Assembly (NCBI RefSeq): GCF_000315625.1
Contig: NW_005434669.1
Coordinates: 155,486 to 219,485, forward strand
Direction: 5' to 3'
Source: Guillardia theta CCMP2712
Taxonomy: Eukaryota > Protista > Cryptophyta
Length of the DNA: 64,000 nt
Shown here in pieces: positions 1 through 39,043 of the stretch. The position numbers and the translations under genes were made by a program. The stretch's first letter is position 1; every line of letters begins with the position of its first letter. The notes under the pieces were generated by a model. That model was not told where the DNA came from, did no database searches, and was given only the letters and a program-made list of their open reading frames with translations.

Positions 1-1334
1 GTACAAATCATGAATGTGAAGTTGCTGCTCCTCCTCAGGTTGGAAGACTTGGCGCTAACTGCGACACAACATGCAACAGTATCGGCAAGATTTGTCACGC
101 AGGTAAGAGGAGTGCAGGAAGACCAGGAAGTGCCAAAGGCGATAAGATTGAGAGGGGCTGGGATAGTACTGCGGGAAGAGGAGGAGGAGGAGGAGGAGGA
201 GAGAGGAAAAGAACAAGGAGGAGGAGGAGAGACGAAGACTAAAATCTGTCACTTCAGAGTACAGCAACCGGATCAACTTGTGTAGAGAGCTAGAGAAGAA
301 CTTTCAGTGTCTGCATGTCCGTTTGCTTTCCTCCCGGGTAGTGCCGACTGCTGATTTGTTCTCCTCAGGGATGCAACAGAGAATTCTTTGGCGCGGACCT
401 CCCGGCCTTCAACACGTCCTGATTGTGTCACTCCGACCCGCGTTTGACTTTTTCTTTCGTGTTTACAGGCAGAGGATGCAATGTCTCATCAACAATGCTC
501 CTCTCGGTAAGTTTGCTTGTCAAAATCTCCTTCCTCCTCTTCTGCTGTCTCTGCTCGTAGTCTCCTTCCTCCTCTTCTGCTGTCTCTGCTTGTAGTCTCC
601 TTCCTCCTCTTCTGCTGTCTCTGCTTGTAGTCTCCATCCTCCTCTTCTGCTGTCTCTGCTTGTAGTCTCCATCCTCCTCTTCTGCTGTCTCTGCTTGTAG
701 TCTCCATCCTCCTCTTCTGCTGTCTCTGCTTGTAGTCTCCATCCTCCTCTTCTGCTGTCTCTGCTTGTAGTCTCCATCCTCCTCTTCTGCTGTCTCTGCT
801 TGTAGTCTCCATCCTCCTCTTCTGCTGTCTCTGCTTGTAGTCTCCATCCTCCTCTTCTGCTGTCTCTGCTCGTAGTCTCCTTCCTCCTCTTCTGCTGTCT
901 CTGCTTGTAGTCTCCATCCTCCTCTTCTGCTGTCTCTGCTCGTAGTCTCCTTCCTCCTCTTCTGCTGTCTCTGCTTGTAGTCTCCATCCTCCTCTTCTGC
1001 TGTCTCTGCTTGTAGTCTCCATCCTCCTCTTCTGCTGTCTCTGCTTGTAGTCTCCATCCTCCACTTCTGCTGTCTCTGCTTGTAGTCTCCTTCCTCCTCT
1101 TCTGCTGTCTCTGCTTGTAGTCTCCATCCTCCTCTTCTGCTGTCTCTGCTTGTAGTCTCCATCCTCCTCTTCTGCTGTCTCTGCTCGTAGTCTCCTTCCT
1201 CCTCTTCTGCTGTCTCTGCTTGTAGTCTCCATCCTCCTCTTCTGCTGTCTAATTCTCTATTCTTCTCAGGTGCTCCCTTCACTTGCGACTCAGTCTATGA
1301 GTTTTCCCGGAGACTTTGTCCTTGTGGGAATTGA
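1..1334 (+). CDS. 3' exons of a gene ending in a MGAT5/GT18-type C-terminal Cys-rich module; 5' part lies outside the window
   Basis: Manual splicing gives VGRLGANCDTTCNSIGKICHA/EYSNRINLCRELEKNFQCLH/GCNREFFGADLPAFN/TQRMQCLINNAPL/GAPFTCDSVYEFSRRLCPCGN*, with stop at 1332-1334. This fits the GxxCxxxC...C...FxC...RxCPC pattern. The last intron is 507-1269. Confidence 0.65.
526..1250. repeat. Intronic minisatellite, 35-bp unit (TCCTCCTCTTCTGCTGTCTCTGCTYGTAGTCTCCW), about 20-21 copies
   Basis: Directly visible tandem array filling intron 507-1269. Confidence 0.95.
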
Positions 1335-3720: not shown

Positions 3721-3765
3721 GGAGGGTGATAAGAGAGAGAGGCTCGCCTCATCAAGTGGGGTATA
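3721..3765. repeat. 45-bp direct repeat, copy 1 (partner at 7064-7108)
   Basis: GGAGGGTGATAAGAGAGAGAGGCTCGCCTCATCAAG(T/C)GGGGTATA; one mismatch between copies. Confidence 0.9.
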
Positions 3766-4479
3766 AATGTTCGATAGTCAGAGACAGGGGCTCCGAGGGG
3801 CCAAGTAACCGCCGCCGCCGCCCGGAATGCAAGCCTAGCAGCTTTGCGAATCTGAAACTTGCATACTTGTGTCACAAACGTTGCGACCGTCACGGATGAC
3901 TCATTCACTACGTGTGCATATAACTTCAACTCACACTCAGCTACGAAACTTGACAAGCCTCAACTTCGCGAGACTCCCTCCTTCACAGCAGCCCCAGCTC
4001 TGATGCCAGGCCCCACTCTCGAAACGCTTCCCCGGTCTCGTTGTAGATGAAACAGTAAGCGTCTGTCTCGTTCCCTCCTTTCTCCTGCACACAACAAGCC
4101 GTCAGCACGGCTCCCGTCTTTCTGGGCTCTTCGAGTCTCTCAGTGCCAGTCACCTACCACTGCGCAGTGATGCCCAAACTGACACACCCACACCTCCTCT
4201 TCGTCCATCGTCATCAGCTCGCCCAATCCTCCTGTCGAGAACGTGAGGGTGCGCGAGGGCAGCATGCCCGTGTACCTGAGATGAACTTCGACGTGTCGCC
4301 CGAGCCTGCCAATGAATCCGCTGGAGCCCAGCTATGTTCGACAATCTCTTCCCAGGTGGCGTTGAGAAAGCAGCCGGCGGTGTCGGGGTGCGACTGGTCC
4401 GAGGTGCTTGTCGTGATGGCACAGGCAGGGAGCTTCGAGTCCAACCCGACGGAAGAGGGCCACGAAGAGAACACGCATT

Positions 4480-6900
4480 CGAGAGGGTTGGACGACAAGG
4501 TGAAATACTTGAGAGGGGGAAGGCTTGCAAAAGCATCTGAGGGGATGAATGTCAACCTGTTGTTAGAAAGCCTGAGGGATTGCAAGCTTGACAGGCCGTC
4601 GAACGACCCCCGCTCTAGACTCGACAGTTGATTATAATCAAGGTCTATACTTCCCAAGCTTGTTAAGCCTTGGAACGCTCCCGCCGGAAGCGAGCTCAGC
4701 TGGTTGCTGGAAAGAATCAAAGTGTACAAGGTTGACAGGCCGTCGAACGACCCCCGCTCTAGACTCGACAGCTGGTTGGAGTCAAGCCTGAGCTCGTACA
4801 AGCTTGCCAAGCCTTGGAACGCCCCCGCCGGAAGCGAGCTCAGCTGGTTGTAGGAAAGAACCAAAGTGTGCAAGCTTGACAGGCCGTCGAACGACCCCCG
4901 CTCTAGACCCGACAGCTGGTTGTAATACAGCCACAGCTCGTACAAGCTTGCCAAGCCTTGGAACGCCCCCGCCGGAAGCGAGCTCAGCTGATGCTTGGCA
5001 AGATCAAGGGTTTACAAGCTTGACAGGCCGTCGAACGACCCCCGCTCTAGACTCGACAGCTGGTTGGAGTAAAGGTACAGGGAATTCAAGCCTGTCAGGT
5101 TCTGGAACGCCCCGGCCGGAAGCGAGCTCAGCAAGTTGCTGGATAGATCCAGGTGATATATGCTGGGCATGCCGTCGAACGACCCCCGCTCTAGACCCGA
5201 CAGCTGGTTGTAACCAAGGTACAGCTCGTACAAGCTTGCCAAGCCTTGAAACGCCCCCGCCGGAAGCGAGCTCAGCTGGTTGTAGGAAAGAAACAAAGAG
5301 TACAAGCTTGACAGGCCGTCGAACGACCCCCGCTCTAGACTCGACAGCTGGTTGTAACCAAGGTACAGGGTTTGCAAGCTTGCCAAGCCTTGGAACGCTC
5401 CCGCCGGAAGCGAGCTCAGCTGTTGGGATGTAAGGCCAAGGAACTGCAAGCTTGACAGGCCGTCGAACGACCCCCGCTCTAGACTCGACAGCTGATTGGG
5501 GTGAAGGTACAGGTATTGCAAGTTTGCCAAGCCTTGGAACGCCCCCGCCGGAAGCGAGCTCAGCTGGTTGTCGGAAAGAATCAAAGTGTGCAAGCTTGAC
5601 AGGCCGTCGAACGACCCCAGCTCTAGACTCGACAGCTGGTTGTAATACAGCAACAGCTCGTACAAGCTTGCCAAGCCTTGGAACGCCCCCGCCGGAAGCG
5701 AGCTCAGCTGATGCTTGGCAAGATCAAGGATGTACAAGCTTGACAGGCCGTCGAACGACCCCCGCTCTAGACTCGACAGCTGGTTGTTATACAGCCACAG
5801 CTCGTACAAGCTTGCCAAGCCTTGGAACGCCCCCGCCGGAAGCGAGCTCAGCTGGTTTTTGTAGAGATAAAGGGTGTGCAAGCCTGTCAGGCCGTCGAAC
5901 GACCCCCGCTCTAGACTCGACAGCTGGTTGTTATCCAACTTCAGTTGGTATAAGCCTGACAGGTTCTGGAACGCCCCCGCCGGAAGCGAGCTCAGCTGGT
6001 TGTAGGATAGATCCAAAGTGTGCAAGCTTGACAGGCCGTCGAACGACCCCCGCTCTAGACTCGATGTCATGCCTCGGCGAAGGCTTAGATATGACAATCT
6101 TGTCAGGTTCTGGAACGCCCCCGCCGGAAGCAAGCTCAGCTGGTTGTAGGAAAGAAACAAAGTGTACAAGCTTGACAGGCCGTCGAACGACCCCCGCTCT
6201 AGAATCGACAGCTGGTTGGAGTCAAGCCTGAGCTCGTACAAGCTTGCCAAGCCTTGGAACGCCCCCGCCGGAAGCGAGCTCAGCAAGTTGCTGGATAGCT
6301 CCAAAGTGTGCAAGCTTGAAAGGCCGTCGAACGACCCCCGCTCTAGACTCGACAGCTGGTTGTTATACAGCCACAGCTCGTACAAGCTTGCCAAGCCTTG
6401 GAACGCCCCCGCCGGAAGCGAGCTCAGCTGGTTGTAGGAAAGATCCAAAGTGTGCAAGCTTGACAGGCCGTCGAACGACCCCCGCTCTAGACCCGACAGC
6501 TGGTTGTAACACAGCCACAGCTCGTACAAGCTTGCCAAGCCTTGGAACGCCCCCGCCGGAAGCAAGCTCAGCTGGTTGTAGGAAAGAACCAAAGTGTACA
6601 AGCCTGACAGGCCGTCGAACGACCCCCGCTCTAGACCCGACAGCTGGTTGTAGTCAAGCCTGAGCTCGTACAAGCTTGCCAAGCCTTGAAACGCCCCCGC
6701 CGGAAGCGAGCTCAGCTGGTTGTCGGAAAGAACCAAAGTGTGCAAGCTTGACAGGCCGTCGAACGACCCCCGCTCTAGACTCGACAGCTGGTTGTAATCC
6801 AACTTCAATTGGTATAAGCCTGTCAGGTTCTGGAACGCCCCCGCCGGAAGCGAGCTCAGCTGGTTGTGGGATAGATCCAAAGTGTACAAGCTTGACAGGC
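4480..6900 (-). repeat. 72-bp coding tandem repeat with a 144-bp A/B higher-order period
   Basis: GGAACGCCCCCGCCGGAAGCGAGCTCAGCTGG and GGCCGTCGAACGACCCCCGCTCTAGACTCGACAGCTGG alternate every 72 bp. Confidence 0.97.
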
Positions 6901-7063
6901 CGTTGAAAGTTCCTTGGGATATGTTGCTGATCCCTCGATAGGTCAGCCGCAGTGTCTGACACGTCGCTTGCTCGCAGTTGCCCGCCCTTGACAGCAATCC
7001 TTCATCGGAGATACTGAAGGTACACGACCCGCACGAGACCTGCTGCTCAGTGCGTGTTCCCGT

Positions 7064-7108
7064 GGAGGGTGATAAGAGAGAGAGGCTCGCCTCATCAAGC
7101 GGGGTATA
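7064..7108. repeat. 45-bp direct repeat, copy 2 (partner at 3721-3765)
   Basis: Near-identical to 3721-3765. Confidence 0.9.
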
Positions 7109-7942
7109 GAGAAGAAAAGGCAGCACTCAGCGTCTAGCCAAACTTGTCGGAACACGGAACAAGTTGAAACTTGAAATCTAACAAGGGGGTTCAAAGGGAG
7201 GTAGGGTACACTGACAATACTTGACAGGATCGGATGGTCGGTACCGGTGTGATCGCTAGTCATATCATGCCAGCCGGGGGGTTAGGGTCAAGCAAGGTGA
7301 CAGGCTCCAAACATATAGGGTCAGTGGTGGGTAAGTTGGTAGGGTGAGGGCCGGGGGGGCCCGGGGCGGCGGCGAGGCCCGAGGTGGATGTGGGGGGGGG
7401 TACTCCAGCCGCTGTAGCTTTGACCCGGGCCTATAGTCAAATATGGTCAAACATACTAGTCAAACCGTGACCATCAACTTGGTGACCGCTGGCCGTGACT
7501 GTCGGTCACTTTGGTCACTACGGTACGGCAGCGGTAAACAGGCTGAAAAAAAAAATACTCGGGGCATTTAAAAAAAAAATTCCATAACTTTAACCGGCGC
7601 AATGCCGGGGCAACCGCCGGCGCCGGCAAAGTGTTTTGAATAATTCTACCTAGTCTCTTAATTATGGTCAGTGTGAGGGGTCACGTATAGATAATTCTTG
7701 GGTATTGAAGGGGTGGTGGGTACCCTATCAATTTTAATCGTTCCATTAGATGAATTTATCCGGCAACATCACCCCTTAATATTCCTGGCTATTATCCGAA
7801 AAGATTGGGGTGGGTACATGTTCAATCAGGGGCGCCGGCCTTTTTGAGAAACACTACTATAATCAGCAATATTACTGGGGGGGACCCCACCCTCCTCCGG
7901 GATACCCTGACAAGCCGCCAGCCGCATCGCATCCTTCCTGGC

Positions 7943-10109
7943 ATGTCATCGTCGAGCCATGTTTGCTTGTTTGGAACAGAATGCAAGATACCTCCGGCAG
8001 AATTAGGAGATAGTACTCTCATCCAGTGCACGGCTTGCTCGAAATACTTTCATCACCTTTGCGCTAACCAAATCAATGGTTGTGAAGATTGGAGTTGGTG
8101 TGGATGCGAACTGCCACTCGCGTCTGGAAGAGAGAAGGAGCTTGAAGAAAGACACAATGCAGATGCTGGTGCTGTTCCAGCAGTTCCTATCGGAGAGAGT
8201 CCAGCACTCTCCGATGCTGGGAGTGATAGATCTGATTCTGCAAGTTTGAACGAGGCCCCTGCAAGCAGTCAAAATTGGAGGAAGGTAATTGCGGATGTAA
8301 AGAACAGGATTTTATCCCAAGGTTCCAAGACCAGGTTGGTGATAACGACAAGCTATTTCCTGGTATTTTGAAATGGTTCATTCAATGGGGATCAGTCTCA
8401 CATATGCACAGGTACGAATCAGTATGATAGATTTCTGATGTCTTTCCACCGAACTATGTCGGTACCAGCACAAGGCGACGGTGAAGAGTCGGAGGCAGCC
8501 AGGAGCTCAACGGATTTGTTATCGTGCCGGAGGAGAGTGTGTATAGAAATGGAAAGGCTGGGGATCAAAGCTGATGAGATAGGAACACATTCTGTAAGGA
8601 AGGTGAATAAGCCAAGTTTGTGGTGAATAGTGACTCGAGCTTACTTCCGGTATAGGGCGCTGCCACCTTCTGTGCAAGTGGAAGTACCCAATGCCCACCT
8701 GTAGTGGCACTTACAGGAAGAGCTGGGTGGGCAAATGGAGGGGTTTATGATCGATACTTCAAGTTCGAGGCAGCAGGTAGAATTTTGCTAAGTTAGTGAC
8801 ATTTGAAATGAGTTATATGCTCGCAGGGGATGCTTTTGTTGGAAGGACAGCGGCAGGATTGCGCATCGATTCTGAAGAATTTGCTATCCTTCCACCTCAC
8901 TTTGGTCCTCAGCAAGACAGTTATGTCAGCGACGCAGTTCAATCGTGCTTCCCACACATCAGGCAGGAATTTCGAGGTGTAGCAGAACATGCTCTCGCGA
9001 GCTTGGTTTATCATTGGGACTATTTGAAGACTCGATTAGACGAGCATCACCTGATGTGGAGCTGTGCATTGGTTCGAACAGAAGGGATGCTGGATGAATT
9101 GAAGCGTCGAGTGAAGTGTGGGTTGCCTGGTGACCCGGGCATCGAAATGAGAAGTACTGGTTGCCCCCCTCATGTCATGCAGAACTTGCATTACAAGATG
9201 ATTGCACAGGAGGTCAGACGACTCAAGGAGGAAATAAGCAAAATGAAGAAACGCCTCAGGAAGATTGACGGAAATGTTCGTGCTACCAAACGTCGCCGTC
9301 AAACTCACAGCGATATAGAAGAGGAAAGTGAGTTGCAAGGAATTGACAGTGGCGACAGTGACAGTGGCAGTGGCAGTGGCAGTGGCAGCGACAGTGACAG
9401 TGGCAGTGGCAGTGGCAGTGGCAGTGGCAGTGGCAGTGAGCGAGCTGCCGCGATGATGGGGGACGATGTTCGCCATCGCCAGATAATGAAGGCCTTCGAT
9501 AGGATGGATAAAAAGATCGACAACATGATGGGGCGGGGTATGACAAATAATTTTACCAGATCTCCTGAGCATCAACAGGCAAATGAAGATACGATGACGG
9601 GGCGGGATGGCTCCGCAAGTGAGGATGAACATTCTGCACATGACATGGGAATTTCAACTTGGAAAGATGCAAACGTGTCAGGTTTCAACGGCACCAAACA
9701 TTTTGGAACGTGGGAGAACGCATGGATTGCATGGCATTTTGGTGACACTGTGAAGAAACATCCTGCTTTGAAGGAATTGAGCAGAGCGCATATGGAAACC
9801 AAAGAAGAAGGAAGGAGATTTAGCGACTTGACCGTTCTTGTCGAAATTTTTGAAAGGTTCGTGAGGAGGGAAATCATGGAATCAGAGAACAGAGATGCAG
9901 AACTTGAACGGTGGAGAAGTTTTGTAGCAAGGCCAACACTGGCTGAAGCTCAACATTGGTTCAAAACATATGACAAAGGCTTTTTCAAATTGGTGAGTTC
10001 TAAGTCGAAGGCACGTACGAGGAGACAAGGACAATTGAAATGGACAACTTATGTTTGAAAAATGCGACAATGGAAGAAAAGTGATGTCAATGCATTTTTA
10101 AATCGTTGA
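7943..10109 (+). mobile_element. Crypton-type (CryptonS-like) tyrosine-recombinase transposon, internally deleted and defective; termini not defined
   Basis: Removing introns 8603-8655 and 8777-8826 gives ADEIGTHSVRKGAATFCASGSTQCPPVVALTGRAGWANGGVYDRYFKFEAAGDAFVGRTAAGL...FAILPPHF, with HSxR, GW and the catalytic Y. There is an N-terminal Cys/His finger and a C-terminal AWIAWHFGD...PALKEL GCR1_C-like region. Stops occur at 8369-8371 and 10056-10058, and the first half of the catalytic domain is not recognisable. Confidence 0.85.
9348..9438 (+). repeat. (AGTGGC/AGTGAC)n coding microsatellite (SG/SD linker)
   Basis: Directly visible inside ORF 8796-10058. Confidence 0.9.
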
Positions 10110-10496
10110 TCATCCATGTAATAAAGAAAAAGATTCATAGCACTGCAATATAATCTTGTTGAAGAAGATGAGAGTTGAAGGATGCAGCAAGACTCTCAAA
10201 CGAAATTGTTCAAGTGTTTTTCACTCCGAGGCGGACTTGTGAGGTTGAAAGGTCATCGAACCCCCCTTCGCCCCCGGGGGTGGTCCAATTATGTGGTGAA
10301 CAATAAAAATGACAGAAAACCTTCAGAGTTTAAAGAAAGTATATAGTGTGCCGGCCAAAGTCTTGGAAAGAAAAACAACTGAGGGTCGGAACCAGGCCCC
10401 CGGTGACCGGCCGCCGCGGGAGGCGTGCCGCGCTCGCGGCGCGGATCGGACGCGGCCGGGGGCCCCCCGGGACCGAGTCCGGGCCCGAAGATGCCC

Positions 10497-10775
10497 GATT
10501 GTCCTCGTACTGATTTTTGACTAACTTTGAGTAAAGGCGGCCCGGCGGTCCGCGCCGGATTCAACTACTAGTGTCCGGACTCCGGACGTGTTTTAAATTT
10601 CAAAAGGACTGGTCCACATCCGAATTTAGGCCCGCCCAGCCTGTTGTCGTACACTCGTGGTTTACTCAAAGTTAAGTTAAAAATCAGTACGAGGACAATC
10701 AGGAGAGTCGAGGAGGCTTGACCCTGACACTGTCGCACAGGCCACTGAACCGTTGAACGGCGAGAAGAAAAAGGA
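10497..10775. repeat. Two inverted copies of a 40-bp dispersed repeat (10497-10535 and 10661-10700); the second extends to about 110 bp
   Basis: GATTGTCCTCGTACTGATTTTTGACTAACTTTGAGTAAA versus TTTACTCAAAGTTAAGTTAAAAATCAGTACGAGGACAATC; the extension matches 20101-20210 in reverse. Confidence 0.9.
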
Positions 10776-11048
10776 CACTCCAGAGGACACTAGTCGGACT
10801 GACTCGGACCTTTAAAACCTGTGGTCGGTATGAGGGGCCAGTGAGTCAAACATCAATGCCTGGGCCGGCTGTGCCATCCATGACCGATGGCGGCGACCGG
10901 AGCTGGGACGGCTGCAAGATGGCGAGGTTTAGCAAGTTGCGACAGACCTGGACAATGAAGAATTGTGTAAGAAGCAGCTCGAAGTAGCCTGGCTTGACGG
11001 GAAAAGCAGCAGGTCCGTCGGAGTAGACGCAGGTTCTTACTATAATTC

Positions 11049-14000
11049 ATGGGTGCAGCCCAGTCCATCGCGCACGTGCGCAATCGAGAGGCTCGGATAC
11101 GAGAGTTGGAGTCGACGGTGCAGGAGCTGGAGCTCCAGCGAGAAGAGTACAGGAAGCTGAAGATCGTAGCCGATGCAGAGAAGAAGAATCTTGCAAGGCA
11201 AGGACTTCTTGTGCGGGAGAATGCTGCGAGAGATCGAGAGTCCAAGGCCATCGCAGGTGAGCAAGTCTTCAGAGTGGCGTTCTCTTGTCCCTCATAGCAG
11301 ACTCTGACGTGTTTGCTCAGAGGGTCAAAGTCAGGTAGATCGATCGTTCATGGAAGCGCAGTATGCTCGTTCTAGGGCTTCAGAACAACGAGCACTGGCA
11401 GAGCTTGCAGACCTGAAGTCAAGATATGACATCCTCCTGCTGGAACATCAAGCCCTTGATATGAGGCGGCAGGCTGAGCATGATCAAGCTGTTTCAAACA
11501 TGCGACAAGCGGCAAACACAAGGCTGTTCTCCGTGCTTTCTCTCCTTGAGAATTTTAACAAGTCTCTGGATGTCTTATATGAAGAGATCATGCAACTTCG
11601 ACAAGACCGAACAGACTTTGCAAAAAAGTGCGTGAATCTGTGCGAGAAGATGAATTTCAAGCAGGTGAAGGTGGACTCGACACTGGAGTTCTTTGAATGT
11701 GAGAATGCGTTGGAGGAGGAGAAAAAGCGAGATCGAAGCATCTTGTCTATGCAGGCCATCGAGTTTCTGCTCTCAGACGACACGATAGCAAAGCCATTGC
11801 AAGCTTACCTCAAAGCCTCGGAAGACGCCAAAACACAACTGCTCCAATCATGCTCAAACCTCCCGGATGGGGCTGGTGAGCTTGTCCCGGAGTCGTCTGG
11901 ACTGCAGGACGACAAGACGAGGGAGAAGATCGAGTTCGTAGACGCGAAGTTGAAGCTGAACCGAAGGTTCGAAGACTTGCAGACTGACACTGATCGCATC
12001 GCGTTGGAGAAGTCGGTGGTGACGGAGCTGTCGATGAGTCTGGGGATCAGCCAGGAAAGGTTCGAGGTTGAAAGATTCAGCAGAGGCAGCATCATTATCC
12101 ACTTCTCTATCCTCCCGCAGAAAAAGGAAGACGCTCCCTTCGGCAGGCCTCTCGAGCGGAGGTCAAGCCAGCTGGAACGGAAGTCCAGCATGTTGGAGAG
12201 GAGGTCGAGTCAGCTCGAGCGCAGGACGAGCATGCTGGTAAAGGAAGAGCTCGACTCCGGTTTCATTGCGATGATCCTCAAGGACATGGTAAACGACCCT
12301 TCCTCAAGGCTGCGAAGAGGTCTTGTCCTCTCCTCCTGCACCGAGTTCTCCTGGATGGCTGCCCCTGAGATCCCGGCGAGGGAGGCGAAGCGAGAGATCA
12401 AACGGCTGGAGGTGGAGATCGAGGAGGTAAGCAAGTACCTGCGGGCGATCAAACAGCAAAAGGAGGATCAGGCAGAGGTCCTGCGACGAGCCGTGCACGC
12501 GAGCATCGAGATCCAGCGGGTCTACCGGGGGATGCAGGGGAGGGTGAAGGTCCGAAGGATTCACATGGCGATAGAGGCAGCGGACACGTTGCAGAGGGTG
12601 TGGCGGGGACACGTGGCAAGGGTGCAGTTCATGAAGATGAAGGAAGCGATGGACATGAAGAACGAGAGGGAGAGAGAAGCTCTGCTGCGAGAAGCCGCTT
12701 CCCTTGAGAAGATGCAGGCTGTAGCGCTCAGAGAGCTGGCGGAGGCAAAGCAGAGGTACAACGAGAGGAGGAACATCAAGTATGGCTACAGCTCGTCGGT
12801 GGCAGAGACATCGATGAAACCAAAGAAGAGGACCAGGGTCAGCATGGAGGAGAAGACGAGATGGTGGGAGGCGTACCAGAATGAAAAACTTCGGGACGCG
12901 CAAGAGATCTTATCGCAGGACATGAAGAACAACGATCATTCTATGTGCTTCGTCCCAGAGGAAGGGTTCAGCCTCAACTACCACGTCCGCCCCCTGATCT
13001 TCACCACCTACCAGGACTTCCGGGAGGAAAGGATGCTTCTTCTCAACGAGAGCTTCCCTTCCTTGCACCAGATGTGCTGCGACAGAGGCGTCGCCTTCTG
13101 CCCCGTTGACCCTTTCCTCCAGATCTATGACCAGACTACTCAGGGGAGGGGGCCGCAGGCATGGCAGTGGGTCGGCTTCGGAGAGGAGGCGATGCTTGAC
13201 GACGAGCTAGTGCAGAGCAAGAGCATGCTGATGTGCTCGATGGAGGACGTGAAGGAGACAAACGTCTGGCTCTTCTTCGTAGGAGGGCGGTACGGGTGGG
13301 TCCCTCCTGCTCCCCTCCTCCGTCAGGCGAAGCAGAAAATCGAGTGGGCAAGAGAGTTCTACGAGGAGTCGGGGATGGAGAACTCTTCGCTGGGAGAAGT
13401 GATGTATACGGCGATCGTTGTGAACAGGATGGACGAGATTAGCACGAAGCTCAAGGGCAGGACCTTCTTCTTCCTCCGTGACGACACGTACGGCGATGCG
13501 TTCGCGCAGGAGATGGCGAAACGATTCGTCGAGGACGATCAGCAGGTTGTCAAGCAGCTCGAGAAGTTCAAGGAGAGTATCAGGATCCTGCCCAAGGGCA
13601 TCTTGACGTTTGACAACTACAGGGACCCGATCTTTGCGGTGCGGCAGGCGACAGAATGGCTGCAGAAAAGCATCAAGTTGACCTTCCCCGTGCTCGCCAA
13701 CAACTACGAGAGTCATCGTGACCGGCTCTGCCACAGCAGCCTCGCCCTGAGCAAGCGCTCTCCCTTCATCCAGCAGGAGGAGCTCTTCGACGTCCTTGAC
13801 GCCCACATCGACCCGAGGCAGAACATGTTGGAGCCCATCGTGCTCGTCGGAGAGGGAGGGAGCGGCAAGACGACTCTCCTCTCCAAGTACCTGGAGCTGT
13901 CGAGAGGAAAGCTGCCTCAAGCCATGTGGTTTGCGCACTTCATAGGATGCAGCAGCGGCAGCAGCGACTACCAGCGACTCTGCGTCAACCTCCAACAAGC

Positions 14001-17000
14001 GCTGAAAGATCGCTTCTCGCTCCAGATTGAAGTGAACAAGAAGCTGCTGGGTACGATGCTCTTCTTTTGCTCCTACTTCTACTTCTACTTCTACTTCTAC
14101 TTCTACTTCTTCTTCTATTTCTACGACTCACCACCACCACCACCTCTATCCTCTATCCTCTATCCTATATCCTCATACTTCCCCTCTGCCTTCCAGTCTC
14201 CTCCCTCCGTTCTCTCTCCCCTCTCTTGACACCCTTGCTGCTGCAGCGGAGAAGATGAGCAAGGAGCTATCGCAATGGCTCTCAGCAGCTGCTTCCAAGG
14301 GGATAGTCATCCTATTCATCGACGCCCTCGACGCCATCGACGACACCTACGATGGTTCTCCTCCTCTCACCTGGCTCCCCAAGAAGTTCCCAGCTCGCAC
14401 GAGAGTCATCTTGACGTGCCGGGAAGGAGCTGCGGCCGAGGAGATCCGAGCGAGGGGCTGGAAAGTCCACCAGATGCCCAGCTGGACCAAGGAAGCAGCT
14501 CTCCTCCTAGCCGAGCAGCACCTCCAGCAGAGGAGTCAGTGGACGGACGTCGCTGACATCTCACTTGGCCCGCAACGCCTGGACAGGATCGTAGCGCACC
14601 CTCCTTGCTCCAACCCTCTGCACCTGCGGTACATGGTCGATGAACTCTGCCGGGAGCACCAGGCCACCAAGATCAACCCCAAGGACCTTCAGGTGGGGTG
14701 CGAGCTGGAGTGGCAGCTCCTGTTCCGTGCCAACGACGTCTGGGCGCTGCTTGACTACGTGCTGCATCGGTGGGAGCGACAGTTTGACACGGCCCGGTGC
14801 CCTCAGCTGGTCCGGAGAGTCTGCAGCCTGTTGTGGGGCAGCTGCTGGGGGCTGTCAGAGTACGAGCTCTTGTGTATGATGCCGGATGTACCAAGAGTTG
14901 TTCTTATGACGTTCTTGGAGAGCACAAAGTTTACCTGGATCAGATACAGTGGATACATCCTTATAGGCCACAGCTCCATGAGAGATGCGATCCAAAGGAG
15001 GTTTGAAGATTATCCGCTTCCTTGCTCCTCCTCCTCTTTGAAACCTCCTCTTCTTCTCACTCCTTCCTCATCCCCCCTCCTTTCCTTCCCTCTCTTGCCG
15101 CCTCCCTCTTCCTTCCTCCTTCCTCCTTCCTCTTGCCTCTTGCCTACGTCTTCCTCCTCTTCCAACTCCACCTGATTCTCGTTGAAAAGATTCGTGCCTG
15201 GACCACAAGAGCAGCGGGAAGTACATCGGTGAGCGAGGGAGAGGAGGTTGTACCCTCTGCTCACTTTCCTTCAGGCGTCTAGGTGAAACTACCCTCGTCT
15301 TGCAGCTCCTCAAACACCTTCAAGGCGGTTTCTGGAGATCTCTACCGCCGTCGAGGAGGAAGCTTGAGGAGGAGATCTATCACTGGAGGAGATCGGAGCA
15401 GGTCTTGCAAGGATGTTGACGTCCTTACTCACTTGACTTTCTGCCAGTGGGCAAATCTTATGGGCGTCTGCTCCGACATGTCGAAATTTCCGCTGGTAAG
15501 GCAGCAGAGGAGAAACAGAGTGAGGGGGAGGGGGTTGAACCAACGTATGCAGTTGTTTGAAGAGGACGACGCCGGGACCCTGTGACGCTGCTACGTCTGT
15601 CCTCTCCTCCGAGCTGAAGCTCCTGCTCGTACAGGCACTGCGACCTCCGAAGATGCGTCAGGGAGGCCGACAAGCACATCGATGCATACAAGGCAGGGGA
15701 GGGCGCGAGAGAGCGCAAAGTGACCAGCAGGACAGGGGCTGCTGGATGGGTTGAAGCGGTATGAGCGCCGCAAGGAGAGCGAGGGGAACGTAAGAGGAGC
15801 GGTATCTGCAGCTGGGATCTGACTGAGGAGCAGCTGGAGAGGATAGGAGTGCTGCTGGCGAAGTTCTTGGGGGAGATGGGAAGGAACAAGGAGGCGACAG
15901 AAATGTACGAGACGATTCTGAACCAGCCGGCACAAGGCCTACAAGGCTCCACAGAGACGCAACATCAAGTGGCTGAGCTCAGGTACGTCGACCGCTCTCC
16001 CATCAGCCTGGTGAGATCGACAAAGGATTCTCTATGGAGAGATCTTGCTGCGCACCTGGAAGGATGCCACGGCAGGGACGGCAGAGAGGTCGTTCGTGCT
16101 GGTCAACAAGGCGCAGGTCTGTAGAGGCGGATCGGTGGGAGGCGCTGAGACCGGGAACAGGATCAGTTCAAGTATGCGTTCGAAGCTCTGAAAGAGTTGT
16201 TGGTGCATGGTAGGCCGGCAAAACTCCCTCCCTCTCTCCCTCCCTCCCTCCCTCCCTCCCTCCCTCCCTCCCTCCCTCCCCTCCCCTCCCTCCCTCCTTT
16301 ACGTTCGGTGCAGATGAGCGAGAGGTGGAAGGGATCACGAAAGATCAAACAATCTCGCAAGAAGAGAAGGACGTCGCACTATCGCAAGCTGAGCTGACGC
16401 TGACAAAAGCTAGAACTTCATTCACAGCTGTCCTGTGTAAACTCGGTCATTCAATCGGTCATGGATGATTCTGAAAAGCCCTGATAGCACAGCAGGAAGA
16501 TTGGAATACTTGGCGGGAGACTTTGAGTCAAGTCAGTTGCACTTCGAGCAGGTGGCGTGTCTTGTTGTGACTTCATCCCCTCGCTCCCTTCCTTCACTTC
16601 CTTCCTTCACTTCCTTCGCCTCTTACTCAACTGAATGCCAGGCAGCCTCCTTTGCGGATCAACACCTCAACCCGACTCATCCGCTCATAGCTGAGGCTCT
16701 GCTGGGCTTGGGTAGTCAGACTTGGAGTCATCCTGCACTGAAGGCGTCGCAGGCGACTTGCTGTTTCAGAGGGGGAGGTACGAGGACGCAGAGAGAGCGA
16801 CGAGAAGGTCCATGTCAATCCGTCAGGTGAAGTCACAACCGCGCTTGACAAGCATGACACGCTCGCAGATCAACCTCGGAGGAGGTCATCCGCTCTTTGC
16901 CGAATCGATCGACAGCCTAGCAAAGATCATGGAGGCGACAGGTGCTGCCCGGTTGCTCCTGCAGGCGCTCAAGCCATTGCTGCAGGCAGGAAGTTTGAGT

Positions 17001-34255: not shown

Positions 34256-37200
34256 TCAAGCTTGCATCTGCATGGTCACGTATGTCAGCAGCGCCCGCAG
34301 AGCGTCATGCTCTCCGTTCCACCTGATGCGCAATCAACTTGGAATAAGGCCCAGCAGGATTCTTGATGAGCTCCGAATGTCGTCCCTGAAGAGCCAGTCA
34401 CTCCCTCCCGACTCCCTCCACTCCCTCCCACCTGCTCCATCACACTCCCCTTGCTGAACACCACGATGTTGTCCGCGTTCTGTCAAGACGCGTCAGGTCC
34501 AGGTCTCTACTCCCGAGTGCCGTCTCTGCTCTACCTGGATGGTGGAAAGGCGATGCGCTACGACGACGACCGTTCTCCCAACCTGGACATCTGTTACATG
34601 AGGCTCCCTCCTCCCTCGCGAGAACCATGAGGTTTTCCAGCGCCTTCTGCACGATCTTCTCGCTCTGAGAGTCAAGCGCGGAAGTAGCCTGAGGCCTATC
34701 GTCAGCACCCACCAGCAGCCCAGCGGCAATCACCTCATCCAGCAGCAGGATGTTCGGGTTCGAGACCATGGCCCTTGCAATCGCGATCCTCTGCGAGACC
34801 TGTCAGACTCCCACGTCTCCCCCATCGCCTCCCTGACCTGCTTCTGTCCGCCGCTGAGCTGAGTTCCTCGCTCTCCGCACTCCGTCTCGAAGTTGCCGGG
34901 CAGGTTCATGATGAAGTCGTACGCGTTGGCGCGCTTGGCGGCTTCATAAACTTCTTCCTTGCGAGCATCCTCCCTGGCAGCGCTAGAGTGAGATCGCATG
35001 AAACCGAGCACAGGCAGCAAGACCTTCCATAGAGGATGTTCTCGTAGATGGAGGTAGCGAACAGCACCTGCGTCCCTCACACGTCACCGAGCTCGCCGAC
35101 ATGGGCAGCCAGGCATACCGGCTCTTGGCTGACAAGCCCCAGGTGAGAGCGCAGCCAACTCAAGTTGAGCGTCTTGATGTCCTTGCCATCCAGCAGCACC
35201 TGACCTGACGTCACCATCGCTGCATCGTCAACACCACCGGGTACCTGCCCCTGGTCTGGTTCGTAGAAACGCTCGATCAGGGAGATAATCGTGCTCTTGC
35301 CACTGCCCGAGCTGCCGACAAGTGCCACTGTCTGACCGGCGTTGATGGCTGTCCAGAGTCACCGGTCGCCGGAACAAGAGGAGCGCGACTCACTCAAGTT
35401 GAGGCCGCTGAAGATTTGAGCTTCGGGTCGAGCAGGGTACGCGAAATGAACGTTCCTCAGCTCAATGTCGCCCTTCACAGAGGCAGGCCTCTCTCCGCCC
35501 TCGTCTTGAATGTCAATCTTGGGTACCTGCCGACGCATTCAGCACCCTTCACACGTGCATGGTTCGGTAGGAGTGGCGCGCGTACCCGATCAATCAGCTT
35601 GAAGATAGCAATGAGCGCTGGCTTGCCTTTGGCAATGTCCGGAGCGAGGGACCCTGCCATGCCAGCCGCCATGCCCATGAAGGTGACGGAGAAGAACACC
35701 TGATCACGCGCCAGTCAGAGAAAGCAAGGAGACCCGCGCATGCACACGTACCTGCAGCACATCCTTGAAGGTGTAATCATAATGATTCATGAGGTAAGCC
35801 CCTCCCGCAAAACCGCAGTAATATAGGAAGAACATTGTGAACAGCGAGAACCCTTGACCTACTCCTGCAGCCAAGGCAGTCTTGCGTTGACCGCCCGTAT
35901 CGGAGCTAGCCAGAGTCAGCAAACCCGCTAGTTGCAACAGCAAGTCTCACTCTAGCGCGGAATGGTAGAGGTCCTCCACCTTCTCCTCTGCTGAGAACGC
36001 GGCGACAGTTCGCAACCCAGCAACTGCCTCGCTAGCCACAGCGGTAGCCCGCTATTTACAAAGACATAATCAGCCTCCTTCCAACTCAAATCTTTGGCAG
36101 CGTTACCTGATAGGCTTTCGACAAGTCTCCGCCAGATCCCGCGATAAACTGCATTTGCAGCATATTCGCAATCACCATCAGCGGGAACGTCGAGAAGCAG
36201 ATCAGCGTCAGCATCCAGCCTCGAATGAACGCGATCGTCAAAGAGATCGCCATGATCACAATGTTCTGGATCATGAGGCCGATAGTGGTTCCGACCGCGT
36301 TCTCTACCAAGGAAGCGTCCTTGGCAAGCTTGGTCGTCAGGCTTCCGCTCGCGTTCTCCGTGTAGTCGAAGAAGCCAACGTCCTGCCGCAGCACGGAGGC
36401 AAAGCTCAGCTTCCTCAGCCGCTGCGTGAGATGCTCGCCCATGATCCCGAAGGAGAAGAGCTGCAGGAAGTTGGCAACGAAAGCAGCAACGGCCAACCCG
36501 ACGAAGCCATAGCAGTACTTGACGATCTTAGTCTCCATCAGGTTGAAGCACACGCTCGGCTCGCTGTAGAACCGATAGTAGAAGACTGGATCCACGTTAG
36601 GTACTTGGTAGCACCACATCCTGGTGTTGTTGAGAGCGGTACAGGCGCCTATCCACTGGCCGTTGCGATAGACGCAGGAGGTGTCGCAGCTCGTCTCGTC
36701 CATGAATATTGAGAACACAACCTTCTTGCCGGGGTTGAAAGGGTCCACGTTTTCTTTTTCAAGGCACATGCTGTACCCAGCGAGCATCTCCGTGAGCAGC
36801 AGCGCAAGCACAGGAAACAAAGCTCCGTTCAAGCAAGCCCCGATCGACCCTGTCAAGGCCCAAGGGAAGAACTCCGGGCTGTTCAGCTTGAACGCTCGGC
36901 TCAGGTAGCCTTTCTCGGCTTTCTTCTCCTCCTCGCTTACCTCCTTGAGCACCACATCTGTCGTAGACTTGGTCGCTGACACTGTGTCCTGCACAGGCTG
37001 ACTTGCCTGGGTTGGCTTCTCCTCTGTTGTGGCTGGAGTCCCTCCTACCGCCGCCTCTCCCGCCATCATCTGCTTCGAGACAAGCTCCCGGTAGAAGCCG
37101 TCCTGCTTCGCGTACAGCTCCTCATGCGTCCCCTCCTCGACGATGGTGCCCGTCTGGAAGACACAGATCTTGTCTGCGTTGCGGATGGTCGACAGGCGGT

Positions 37201-39043
37201 GAGCGACCACCACGACGGTCCTCCCGTCCATGAGGTTGTCCAGCGCTCCCTGTACGAGCTTCTCGCTCTCCGAGTCCAGGGCCGACGTGGCCTCGTCCAG
37301 CAGGAGCACCTTGGGGTTGGAGATGATGGCGCGCGCAATCGCGATCCTCTGCTTCTGACCGCCGCTCAGCTGCGTCCCTCTCTCCCCGCACAGCGTGTCG
37401 TACTTGCCCGGAAGCCCGGAGATAAACATGTGAGCGTTGGACGCCACCGACGCCTTCTCGATCTCGTCCATGGAGGCGTCGGGCTTGCCGTACTTGATGT
37501 TCTCAGCGATCGACACCGCAAACAAGATCGGCTCCTGTGACACGATGCTCAGGTGCTCGCGCAGCCACTTGACGTTGAGCGTTCGCAGGTCTCTGCCGTC
37601 CAGCATGACCTGCCCCGCGTCCGGGTCGTAGAAGCGAAGCAGCAGCTGGATCACCGTGCTCTTGCCGCTCCCCGAGGCCCCGACCAGCGCCGCCGTCTGA
37701 CCCGCTGCGATGTTGAGGTCGAGGTTGGTGAAGATGGGAGCGTCCTGGCGGGCTGGGTAGGTGAAGGCGATGCCCTTGAGGCAGATGTCACCCTTGACAC
37801 TTGCTGGCTTCTCGCCTGACGGATCTTCGATGTCGATGGGGGGCTTGCGGTCGATGATGTCGAAGATTCTCTTAGCTGACGCCTGGCCCTTCATGAACGC
37901 CTGCACACAAGGCCCGACCTGACCGAGACTGAAGCCTCCCATCACGATGGAAAAGAAAACCAACATGATGTCCCCTGCTGAGTAGAGAAAACCAGTGCGG
38001 CTGTTGGTAACACCGTGCGCGATCAGCCAGCTGCCAAACCACAGTCCCAGGGCGTACGGAAATATTGTTGTGCTCATGACGATGCCCATTCCCAACGCAT
38101 TGGTACGAGCCTTCTTGATTCCCATGTCCAGCGCCTCGTCCAGGTTCGAGCAGTACCTCTGGTTCTCTCGTTGCTCTCCTCGCAGCGACGCTACAGTTCT
38201 GATCCCGGTGATGGCCTGCTCCGCAACAGCTCCTGCTCATACCGGCCAAGCCCGTCAGCACATCCCAACACTTTCCTCCTTCTCCTCCTCGTCATACCTG
38301 CAGAGCGATACGCCCGCTCTCCCTTAGTAGCAAGGTCTGCCAGGTTCTTTGCCATCCAAGCTCCAGCCCCGGCCAGCAGCGGCAAGCACGCGCATATAAC
38401 CTATCAAAAGCTCAGAGCACCGCCCAGACTGTCCCACCCCTCCCCTCCCCTCTTCTCCCAAGCTCACCAAAGCCATCTCCCACCCTTGCCAGAACCCAAG
38501 TGCGATTCCAATGACGAAAGTGGACAGGTTATGAACGAAGAGTACGGCCTTCTCGCCTATGGCCCCCTGCACGTTGGAGCAGTCGCGCTCGATCGACGTG
38601 GTGATCTCTCCAGTCTTCTGGGTGTCAAACCAAGCGATGTTCTGTCTCAAGATGGCCTTCACGTACTGCCTCCGCAGCCTTGATCCCTGGTTGGCTGCGG
38701 CCAAGAGCATGGCGCCGTTGGAGATGGAGCCGCATACGAGCAAGCCCAGGCTGATCCAAAGGAAAAACAGAGCAGTCTTGTTGACCTCACTAGCAGAGAG
38801 CGAGCTTGCTCCAAACCCTCCGTTGATGAGGTCCTTGAAGAACAGCGTGAAGGCAGGGAGAGCTGCGCCAGTTGCTACTGAGCCAATAAGGGAGATGAAT
38901 ATGAGGAAATCATCCAAAGCATCAGCATAGCGAAAGAGAGCAAAGAATGATGTTTTCTCCTGTTTGGCGAGATCTACCTCGTTGGAAGGAGATCGTCCAT
39001 TCTGGTCCTCAGAAGATGCAGGTTTGACCTTGTTTGACTGCAT
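34256..39043 (-). CDS. Full-length ABCB (MDR/P-glycoprotein) transporter, copy 1
   Basis: TMD-NBD-TMD-NBD layout; [42 protein letters not shown]; second NBD with GSSGSGKST split over short introns. Confidence 0.95.

Follow-up and report, generated by a model that had tools for sequence, protein, structure and literature searches.

How can one gene hold most of every repeat nearly constant while the rest of the repeat differs from unit to unit? The question is raised by a minus-strand gene of Guillardia theta CCMP2712, located in the 64,000-nucleotide stretch of DNA that was analyzed here (the window) and consisting largely of a long array of LRR units. The first-pass annotation read this array as a VLR-like diversifying recognition system in a unicellular eukaryote, built by cassette shuffling or gene conversion through identical frameworks. 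The host is indeed unicellular, a cryptophyte. The locus fits germline concerted evolution, within a large family of receptor-like genes, better than it fits lamprey-style assembly. The reading that we favor, at a probability of roughly 0.6, is that the gene is a germline-encoded representative of an LRR protein family, secreted or membrane-anchored, that is specific to cryptophytes, and that its array has been under concerted evolution from which short patches encoding the β-strands have escaped.

Layout of the gene

The gene contains 32 regular units of 24 amino acids, unit k starting at position 6901-72(k-1) of the minus strand, and on the 3' side of these lie unit 33 (4597-4526), which is divergent, and then a C-terminal cap (Table 1). 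The earlier count of about 33 repeats with a strict A/B alternation was thus accurate: throughout the 32 units, odd ones end in LSSLPAGAFQ and even ones in LSSLERGSFD, and TRF returned a period of 144 nt with 16.1 copies. Pfam LRR_8 matches the array with an E value of 6.7e-178, and the "typical" 24-residue LRR consensus LxxLxLxxNxLxxLPxxxFxxL fits it. An AF2 model (pLDDT 83) has a 24-residue strand periodicity, with predicted β-strands on codons 7-12 of each unit. The N-terminal cap, all 33 LRRs, and the C-terminal cap are contiguous in a single exon of a germline gene, and the 2.3-kb reading frame of the array is interrupted by one TAA alone.

Downstream of the regular units, the segment 4276..4597 aligns with GUITHDRAFT_90447, the product of a paralog, and with a Hanusia phi protein. 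Removal of the predicted 44-nt intron would join ..KFIS in frame to GGLGELM, which compares with the family motif SGGLGKLM, and once both predicted introns are taken out, the 3' end of the gene aligns throughout with GUITHDRAFT_90447 and Hanusia phi P0112. The two copies of a 45-nt direct repeat, found upstream and downstream of the gene, are 97.8% identical to each other by BLASTN and are the only two in the genome.

Table 1. Features of the LRR gene and its surroundings (window coordinates)
Feature	Position	Strand	Basis and remarks
Cys-rich N-terminal cap, family-specific (VSCGSCTF...GNC...C)	6902..7039	-	Translation; directly upstream of LRR unit 1
32 LRR units of 72 nt each, forming 16 A/B pairs	4598..6901	-	TRF, unit table, Pfam LRR_8
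Make-up of each unit: 48-nt homogenized framework and 24-nt variable patch (codons 6-13)	within 4598..6901	-	Per-codon diversity
In-frame TAA at codon 6 of unit 27	5012..5014	-	Translation; Tyr (TAC) stands here in related units
Unit 33, C-terminal cap (NPLECV..SWP..C), and start of the C-terminal domain, to the GT splice donor	4276..4597	-	Translation
Predicted intron, 44 nt, GT..AG, phase 1	4232..4275	-	Reading frame and family motif
Exon with core of the C-terminal Cys domain (GGLGELM...EVWVC...C)	4158..4231	-	Family alignment
Predicted second short intron, GT..AG	4085..4157	-	Inferred; donor possibly 3 nt more upstream
Last exon (..YCFIYNE..F.EWGL..L), with TGA stop at 3985-3983	3983..4084	-	Family alignment
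45-nt direct repeat, upstream copy	7064..7108	+	BLASTN; occupies the expected signal-peptide position
45-nt direct repeat, downstream copy	3721..3765	+	BLASTN; ~220 nt past the stop codon

Diversity, order, and re-use of the patches

Nucleotides 16-39 of the unit hold 71% of the within-type nucleotide diversity, the largest share among all 24-nt windows and one that was reached in 0 of 20,000 column shuffles. The first-pass annotation had placed the variation in this patch, and the even spread along the unit that would have spoken against it was not seen. Within unit types, nucleotide identity is 92-94% in the framework versus 61-69% in the patch. At the amino acid level the framework is 86-92% identical and whole units only 75-80%, because 5 to 7 of the 24 residues are hypervariable. 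The variable codons (6, 7, 9, 11, and 12) coincide with the predicted β-strand of each repeat in the AF2 model, in keeping with the concave-face location proposed for them. Tyr makes up 28% of the exposed positions, where Ser, Asp, Thr, and His are also abundant.

Synonymous sites follow the same division. Third-position diversity is 0.40 in the patch versus 0.066 in the framework (about six times), synonymous diversity is 0.39-0.56 versus 0.08-0.12, and Leu codons within patches differ by multiple steps (TTG, CTT, CTG, CTC, and CTA). Coalescence is thus far more recent for the frameworks than for the patches. The contrast is not one of a frozen framework beside an ordinary patch, since the patch is far more diverged at synonymous and third positions as well.

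A per-codon selection check had been proposed, and its outcome is divided. Among closely related patches, the five exposed codons carry 26 nonsynonymous changes and 1 synonymous change (27 events in all), and in odd units the corresponding count is 16:0 (P = 0.024). Over all patches, piN/piS at exposed codons is 0.8-1.35, which does not establish positive selection for the deep differences, saturated as they are.

All of the patches that the first-pass annotation quoted are present in the translated array, and the recurrence of some of them at nonadjacent positions was confirmed. Thirty of the 32 patches are distinct at the nucleotide level. YELWLYNN (units 8 and 16) and YELRLDSN (units 10 and 30) recur as nucleotide-identical copies, HTLDLSYN recurs in units 7 and 13 with one synonymous base of difference, and LDLAKH is present in units 17 and 27. 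Half-and-half mosaics had also been suspected, and units 22 and 24 provide at least one convincing case: 6 of the first 8 bases of their patches differ but none of the last 16 do, and the first 9 bases of unit 24 are those of the YELW patch group.

The order of the patches is nearly random, and adjacent patches are almost unlinked. There are 7 adjacent pairs of similar patches versus 3.5 expected (P = 0.057), and an overall correlation is absent. The longest exact in-register match within the array is 113 nt, and some pairs of neighboring units recur jointly, among them 1-2 with 13-14, 3-4 with 29-30, and 17-18 with 27-28. Block duplication was considered as a source of patch re-use; by the count of adjacent pairs, it made a minor contribution at most.

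These observations bear on the strongest alternative, recent amplification alone, in which a two-unit A/B seed was tandemly duplicated and the patches were then point-mutated under strong positive selection, with no continuing conversion of the frameworks. The 144-nt period, the strict alternation, and the jointly recurring neighbor pairs are what such a history would leave, as is the nearly complete excess of nonsynonymous changes among recent ones. We nevertheless consider it unlikely. Patch diversity at synonymous and third positions is ~5-6 times that of the framework and extends to the multi-step Leu codon differences, and selection on amino acids against a young background is therefore insufficient as a cause. 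Exact in-register duplicates also reach 113 nt at most, and neighboring patches are linked scarcely more than by chance.

A cryptophyte receptor-like family and the state of the window copy

At least 55 loci make up the lineage-specific family of Guillardia theta that includes this gene, and the Cys-rich N-cap, the C-cap, and the C-terminal domain are the family's own. The N-cap in the window matches that of one paralog with an E value of 3.4e-12 (locus L065; the genome has 59 such matches) and carries the motif (V/I)SCG.C.F.(V/I)S..G.L.R.G.C; the same cap is found in P0112 of Hanusia phi. The window gene also has both the C-cap motif N.L.C...SWP and, following it, the C-terminal Cys domain GGLG..M...EVWVC...C....C(Y/F).(Y/F).E...F..W. 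Pfam LRRNT and LRRCT did not match the caps, a protein language-model atlas search with the C-terminal domain was blank, and a Foldseek comparison of its model with the PDB, combined with an atlas search, returned no credible relatives. A homology search with the whole protein returned generic animal and bacterial LRR proteins and no ortholog with the same framework. The literature searched yielded nothing on a family of LRR proteins in Guillardia, and as far as that search extends the family is undescribed.

In intact members, a signal peptide leads directly into the Cys-rich N-cap; "typical" 24-residue LRRs come next, then a Cys C-cap and a Thr/Pro stalk. The C terminus is of one of two kinds, a small Cys domain or a transmembrane helix followed by a conserved tail. 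The family likely serves in extracellular binding or recognition of variable ligands. Intact paralogs on contigs C29, C104, C226, and C19 are likewise hypervariable at positions 6/7, 9, 11, and 12, on homogenized frameworks that are specific to each locus; most other paralogs are saturated throughout. The first three of these regions span 485-487 kb of C29, 175-184 kb of C104, and 19.5-25 kb of C226, and the window gene lies within C5:159,500-162,700. At the exposed codons of intact paralogs, piN exceeds piS (0.40/0.28, 0.34/0.18, and 0.35/0.23). The window framework is 58-67% identical in nucleotide sequence to those of the other homogenized paralogs, and the genes on C19, C29, and C104 have a framework in common at 85-94%.

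The window copy is probably a recently inactivated pseudogene, because it has an in-frame TAA, lacks an ATG and signal peptide, and has essentially no RNA reads. No in-frame ATG or signal peptide was found upstream of the N-cap, where the 45-nt repeat occupies the sequence, and a signal peptide scan of the minus strand over 7037-7600 and 10371-11400 gave nothing convincing. Only 3 ambiguous RNA reads were found among the 19.8 million read (6% of one run), a result compatible with expression at other times, and the contigs of no RNA run contain the gene. In 4 of the 32 units the structural Asn is missing. The frame is otherwise intact over ~2.9 kb with a single stop, and the C-terminal exons are conserved; the gene was therefore inactivated recently, after the pattern had formed in a live copy.

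That same evidence separates our preferred reading from one in which the locus is a neutral relic, a dead gene where mismatch-limited conversion keeps the frameworks identical, the diverged patches drift, and the variability has no present function. The signs of inactivation and the lost Asn residues would suit a relic, as would a piN/piS of ~1 at exposed codons, and a neutral barrier, with heterology alone blocking conversion and without selection, could produce the same picture. We regard the relic as slightly less probable again than recent amplification, since a long frame with one stop and conserved C-terminal exons point to recent inactivation, and intact paralogs vary at the same positions with an excess of piN over piS.

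Origin of the pattern and comparison with known systems

No source for the framework or for the recurrent patches was found elsewhere in the assembly. Framework 29- to 30-mers, allowing up to 3 mismatches, gave 16 + 16 matches in the 87-Mb assembly, none of them outside the array. Two of the recurrent patches, searched as 24-mers with up to 2 mismatches, likewise had no match outside it, and a DNA search with one 144-nt unit matched the array alone. Paralogs with the same framework, for which the first-pass annotation had proposed to look, are thus absent from the assembly, and so is the expected sharing of cassettes: when the 32 patches were compared with 28 paralog loci, the mean best Hamming distance was 5.9 versus 5.95 for shuffled patches, with no excess similarity.

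Reads from an independent DNA library (38 nt, ~10x) revealed no alternative bases at 10% or more of reads anywhere in the array, the TAA site included, and no rearrangement joints, rare rearranged molecules being below the reach of such data. The array and its flanks have the same read depth, and the assembly is therefore neither collapsed nor inflated there; these reads are too short for checking unit order. A Crypton-like tyrosine-recombinase element next to the gene (7577-10370) was considered as part of the system and rejected. It is an ordinary multi-copy transposon that does not travel with LRR genes, with copies on C60 and C46 that are 98.5% identical and ~77 matches in the genome, none beside LRR paralogs.

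The VLR-like aspect of the original proposal is consequently not supported, the array being contiguous in the germline, with no donor bank in the assembly and no joints or variants at 10% or more in the reads. Programmed diversification of the VLR or antigenic-variation type, in which patches would be written somatically or mitotically from donors or by a targeted mutator, is suggested by the look of the array itself, by nonadjacent patch recurrence and the one intra-patch mosaic, and by a variable surface rich in Tyr, Ser, and Asp. It is nonetheless highly improbable given the lack of framework and patch donors in the assembly and paralogs, the homogeneity of the reads at the 10% level, the transposon nature of the neighboring recombinase, and a locus without RNA support. 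Least probable of all is an assembly artefact, whether reads of several LRR genes were merged into a mosaic or the repeat was collapsed or expanded: this is a tandem array of 2.3 kb, short-read unitigs break inside it, and the reads used do not span it, but depth is even and every position is supported with no alternative base at 10% or more, the framework occurs at no other locus with which it could be confused, and the 30 distinct patches anchor the unit order.

Under the favored reading of germline concerted evolution, in-register exchange within the array, by gene conversion or unequal crossing-over, would initiate in the 48-nt frameworks and hold them 92-94% identical. The 24-nt patches may escape because selection favors a varied concave surface, or because their own heterology halts conversion tracts. 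They would then stay old and diverged, synonymous sites included, and would be reshuffled among themselves, with occasional copying to another position or internal recombination. If so, the re-used cassettes and mosaics need no external donor bank. Shuffling or conversion through the identical frameworks, as first proposed, agrees with almost unlinked patches and a mosaic; conversion itself we infer from this pattern. It is conceivable, at long odds, that mitotic intra-array recombination in the intact paralogs on C29, C104, and C226, and formerly in the window gene, makes clonal cultures mosaic for LRR binding surfaces. Such mosaicism lies below the reach of ~10x coverage by 38-nt reads; if true, frequent mitotic recombination of frameworks would constitute a unicellular, donor-free analogue of VLR and antigenic-variation systems.

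To our knowledge, no recognition or immune receptors have been described in cryptophyte algae. In Guillardia theta and at least Hanusia phi, secreted and membrane-anchored LRR proteins form a large family specific to the lineage, and several of its arrays bear the signature known from fungal NLR and brown-algal ROCO genes, namely, homogenized scaffolds with Tyr/Ser/Asp-rich hypervariable binding positions. In a model alga that grows readily in culture, the family is therefore a concrete candidate for recognizing bacteria, viruses, or mates. The array would also be an unusually clean natural case of a repeat protein shaped by framework conversion that short heterologous patches bring to a halt. 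The family finding is independent of the window copy, itself probably a recent pseudogene, and the intact paralogs matter more for follow-up.

By sequence and fold, the best matches to the array among solved proteins are LRRC15, LRIG1, LGR4/5, chondroadherin, and TLR3 (phmmer E = 1e-97 to 1e-49; Foldseek probability 1.0). This is general similarity of the LRR class at ~30% identity, and the repeats of these animal ectodomains are individually diverged, without internal homogenization. The array also resembles engineered repebody libraries. VLRs of lampreys and hagfish rank far below LRRC15, LRIG1, LGR4/5, and TLR3. They share with the Guillardia gene the "typical" 24-residue consensus (..NQL..LP.G.F..L..L..L.L..N), variation on the concave β-strands, and a layout of cap, LRRs, cap, and Thr/Pro stalk. 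A VLR, however, starts as an incomplete germline gene that is completed somatically from donor cassettes, whereas the Guillardia gene has no incomplete germline form, no donor bank in the assembly, and no sign of somatic assembly, and its caps are not Pfam LRRNT/LRRCT. The plant extracellular LRR resistance proteins Cf-9 and Cf-4, reportedly treated by Parniske and colleagues in 1997, are also germline families with hypervariable solvent-exposed xxLxLxx residues, diversified by unequal crossing-over, gene conversion, and birth and death in clusters. They differ in having a plant-specific consensus and repeats that are not near-identical at synonymous sites, and the Guillardia caps and C-terminal domain are unrelated to theirs.

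Among known systems, fungal NLR repeats under concerted evolution and the LRR shuffling of Ectocarpus come closest. In fungal NLRs, WD, ANK, and TPR repeats show high internal conservation (nwd/hnwd genes; Paoletti 2007; Chevanne 2010; reviewed in Dyrka et al. 2014, PMC4986451), defined there as at least 85% amino acid identity over at least 100 residues; LRRs were not found among them (PMC4986451). The likeness lies in near-identical tandem repeats within one gene, hypervariable positions on the binding surface, reshuffling of repeats by concerted evolution (probable in Guillardia), and an expanded, fast-evolving family of recognition type. The Guillardia repeat is instead an LRR in an extracellular protein with no NOD/STAND domain, and its whole units, at 75-80% identity, fall under 85%, with the framework alone at 86-92%. 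Exchange between paralogs is not seen for the window gene because its framework is unique. In the brown alga Ectocarpus, LRR-ROCO and NB-ARC-TPR genes undergo exon shuffling in which 24-residue LRR modules are exchanged and concave-face residues are positively selected, and the question of an adaptive-like immunity was raised (Zambounis et al. 2012, PMC3341825). Both systems belong to algae outside plants and animals and combine 24-residue LRR modules with a variable concave face. The Ectocarpus proteins are intracellular, with GTPase or kinase domains, whereas those of Guillardia are secreted or at the surface. Ectocarpus has one LRR per 72-bp exon and shuffles through introns; the Guillardia array lies in one exon, and exchange must therefore use the coding frameworks themselves.

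Repeat layout and the distribution of variation

Translation of the minus strand gave a Cys-rich N-cap followed by 32 regular 24-residue LRRs, a divergent unit 33, and a Cys-containing C-cap. Unit k starts at 6901 - 72(k - 1), and without exception odd (type A) units end in LSSLPAGAFQ and even (type B) units in LSSLERGSFD. Pfam matched the gene to LRR families only (LRR_8, E = 6.7e-178), and an AlphaFold model of the N-cap and ten units (pLDDT 83) placed one strand per 24 residues, at codons 7 to 12 of every unit. By fold and sequence, the nearest solved proteins were ordinary "typical" LRR ectodomains (LRIG1, chondroadherin, LRRC15, LGR4/5, and TLR3), with VLR-A ranked far below them. Three antisense ORFs also traverse the array; these are a side effect of the stop-free opposite strand of the repeat and do not point to genes.

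The first-pass annotation had described a near-identical framework carrying a variable xxLxLxxN patch, and the alignment of units bore this out. Within a unit type, identity was 92-94% over the 48-nt framework versus 61-69% over the 24-nt patch (codons 6 to 13). Nucleotides 16-39 of the unit held 71% of within-type diversity, the most of any 24-nt window and a share that none of 20,000 column shuffles matched. The framework was indeed conserved even at synonymous sites (diversity, 0.08-0.12); what had been missed is that the patch varies at silent sites too (0.39-0.56). Third-position diversity was likewise 0.40 in the patch versus 0.066 in the framework, and the structural residues Leu8 and Leu10 are encoded by up to five different codons. 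Because the patch is far more variable than the framework at silent sites, the frameworks are young and the patches old. Such a silent-site excess cannot arise by amino acid selection alone in an array that was amplified recently.

All of the patches quoted earlier, with their recurrences, are present in the array, and two recurrent patches are nucleotide identical (units 8/16 and 10/30). The half-and-half mosaics have a clear case in units 22 and 24, whose patches differ at 6 of the first 8 bases and at none of the last 16. Among closely related patches, exposed codons showed 26 nonsynonymous changes versus 1 synonymous change. Tyr makes up 28% of the residues at exposed positions, where Ser, Asp, Thr, and His are also abundant. 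The structural Asn is missing in 4 of the 32 units (12, 17, 21, and 27).

An assembly mosaic, the alternative raised at the outset, found no support in independent 38-nt DNA reads: depth over the array equaled that of the flanks, and the array contained neither alternative bases at ≥10% nor rearrangement joints. Thus, the array sequence is neither collapsed nor chimeric, although reads of 38 nt are too short to bear on unit order.

State of the window copy and its neighbors

The window copy is probably a recently inactivated pseudogene. It carries an in-frame TAA, uncontradicted by the DNA reads, at a codon that is TAC in the related unit 17, and neither an in-frame ATG nor a signal peptide was found 5' of the N-cap. 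One RNA-seq run yielded 3 ambiguous reads for the gene among 19.8 million read, and the gene was absent from the contigs of all RNA runs. The remainder is intact; with two predicted short introns removed, the 3' end aligns at full length to a paralog product (GUITHDRAFT_90447) and to a Hanusia phi protein. A 45-nt direct repeat (97.8% identity) that occurs nowhere else in the 87-Mb genome flanks exactly the signal-peptide-less LRR gene and ~220 nt of 3' flank; a rearrangement junction and insertion of the gene body are both possible origins.

Coordinates of features in the window
Feature	Position	Strand	Details
35-nt tandem repeat	526-1250		Inside minus-strand ORFs; 20.7 copies, 97% identity
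45-nt repeat, downstream copy	3721-3765		~220 nt past stop codon
Predicted GT..AG intron	4157-4085	minus	Removal restores 3' alignment to family
Predicted GT..AG intron	4275-4232	minus	Removal restores 3' alignment to family
LRR tandem repeat	4583-6907	minus	TRF: period 144 nt, 16.1 copies
Antisense ORFs	4804-6663	plus	209, 259, and 139 aa
In-frame TAA	5014-5012	minus	Unit 27, codon 6
45-nt repeat, upstream copy	7064-7108		Occupies expected signal-peptide site
Translated region containing N-cap, LRRs, and C-cap	7126-4214	minus	
Crypton-like element	7577-10370		Includes GS/DS-rich hexamer repeat
Tyrosine-recombinase ORF	8796-10058		Within Crypton-like element
959-aa and 306-aa ORFs	11350-15175	plus	
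ABC-transporter ORF	36086-38125	minus	ABC_tran domain
ABC-transporter ORF	42136-44364	plus	ABC_tran domain
ABC-transporter ORF	48955-50541	plus	ABC_tran domain

The neighboring Crypton-like element looks recently active: copies on contigs C60 and C46 are 98.5% identical, and ~77 protein-level matches occur genome-wide. Public-run contigs part exactly at its edge (7577/7578). We considered its tyrosine-recombinase gene as part of the LRR system and rejected this, as it belongs to an ordinary multicopy element with no association with LRR genes. Farther along, a 959-aa ORF has weak IQ, AAA_16, and NACHT matches near residues 810-886, and the 306-aa ORF after it weakly matches an NPHP3 helical domain; together they may form one STAND/NLR-like gene ~4 kb from the LRR gene. 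ABC_tran spans residues 133-281 with near-identical scores in each of three ORFs, which suggests a recent local triplication with one copy inverted.

The gene family in Guillardia and Hanusia

The window gene is part of a large family in Guillardia theta CCMP2712: of 265 candidates, at least 87 matched at the protein level, and the family-specific N-cap has 59 genomic matches. No published account of the family was found in the literature searched. In intact members, a signal peptide and the N-cap precede 6 to >40 LRRs, a C-cap, and a Thr/Pro stalk, and the protein ends in either a Cys domain or a transmembrane helix followed by a conserved tail; the architecture in Hanusia phi is the same. 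The Cys domain (~75 residues, four Cys, GGLG...EVWVC...C...FCYVFDE...F.PW) terminates many members and has 62 matches genome-wide (e.g., paralog locus L065:1111-1332, minus strand), some capping ORFs of 2,000-3,600 aa. Neither it nor the caps matched Pfam, and its moderate-confidence model (pLDDT 65-83 within the domain) had no structural relatives. Two membrane-anchored paralogs, L050 (C13:983-987 kb) and L051 (C82:259-264 kb), have a common cytoplasmic tail, ..(W/Y)P(R/K)LKPS.....FSK(I/V)L..W(L/M).REHK.P..RR, which may be a signaling or sorting motif.

In most paralogs, the repeats are saturated and diverged one by one. Genes on contigs C29, C104, C226, and C19 have locus-specific homogenized frameworks, with hypervariable positions as in the window gene and exposed piN > piS. 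Frameworks of C19, C29, and C104 are 85-94% identical in nucleotides; that of the window gene is unique (58-67% to other homogenized paralogs).

Origin of the pattern and comparison with known systems

The array, likened to VLRs in the first-pass annotation, fails the tests that define a VLR system. Searches of 87 Mb with both frameworks (≤3 mismatches) and with two of the recurrent patches (≤2 mismatches) matched this array alone, and shuffled controls came as close to the paralogs as the patches did, contrary to the expectation of shared cassettes; a donor bank is absent. Concerted evolution is the best reading of the array. Short-tract conversion or unequal exchange would begin in the identical frameworks and homogenize them, and the patches might persist if heterology halts conversion tracts or if selection favors a varied concave face. 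Recurrent and mosaic patches would be explained by occasional transfers or internal crossovers. Similar patches seldom had similar neighbors (7 pairs versus 3.5 expected, P = 0.057), and the longest exact in-register match (113 nt) equals one patch plus its two frameworks. Collectively, the original observation is confirmed and its interpretation partly supported: the array is a fast-evolving repeat receptor of an already known kind, here in a probably pseudogenized copy, and the intact paralogs are a better target.

Recently expanded LRR arrays show the frozen-framework look more than rarely, since at the protein level three unrelated, metagenome-derived, bacterial-like LRR proteins (P0003, P0006, and P0010) combine a near-identical framework, NQL(T/A)(A/E)LP(E/A)G(I/V)FDGL(T/N)SL, with variable xxLxLxx. 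[quoted passage not shown] The window gene differs in its repeat type, extracellular architecture, single-exon array, and host lineage.
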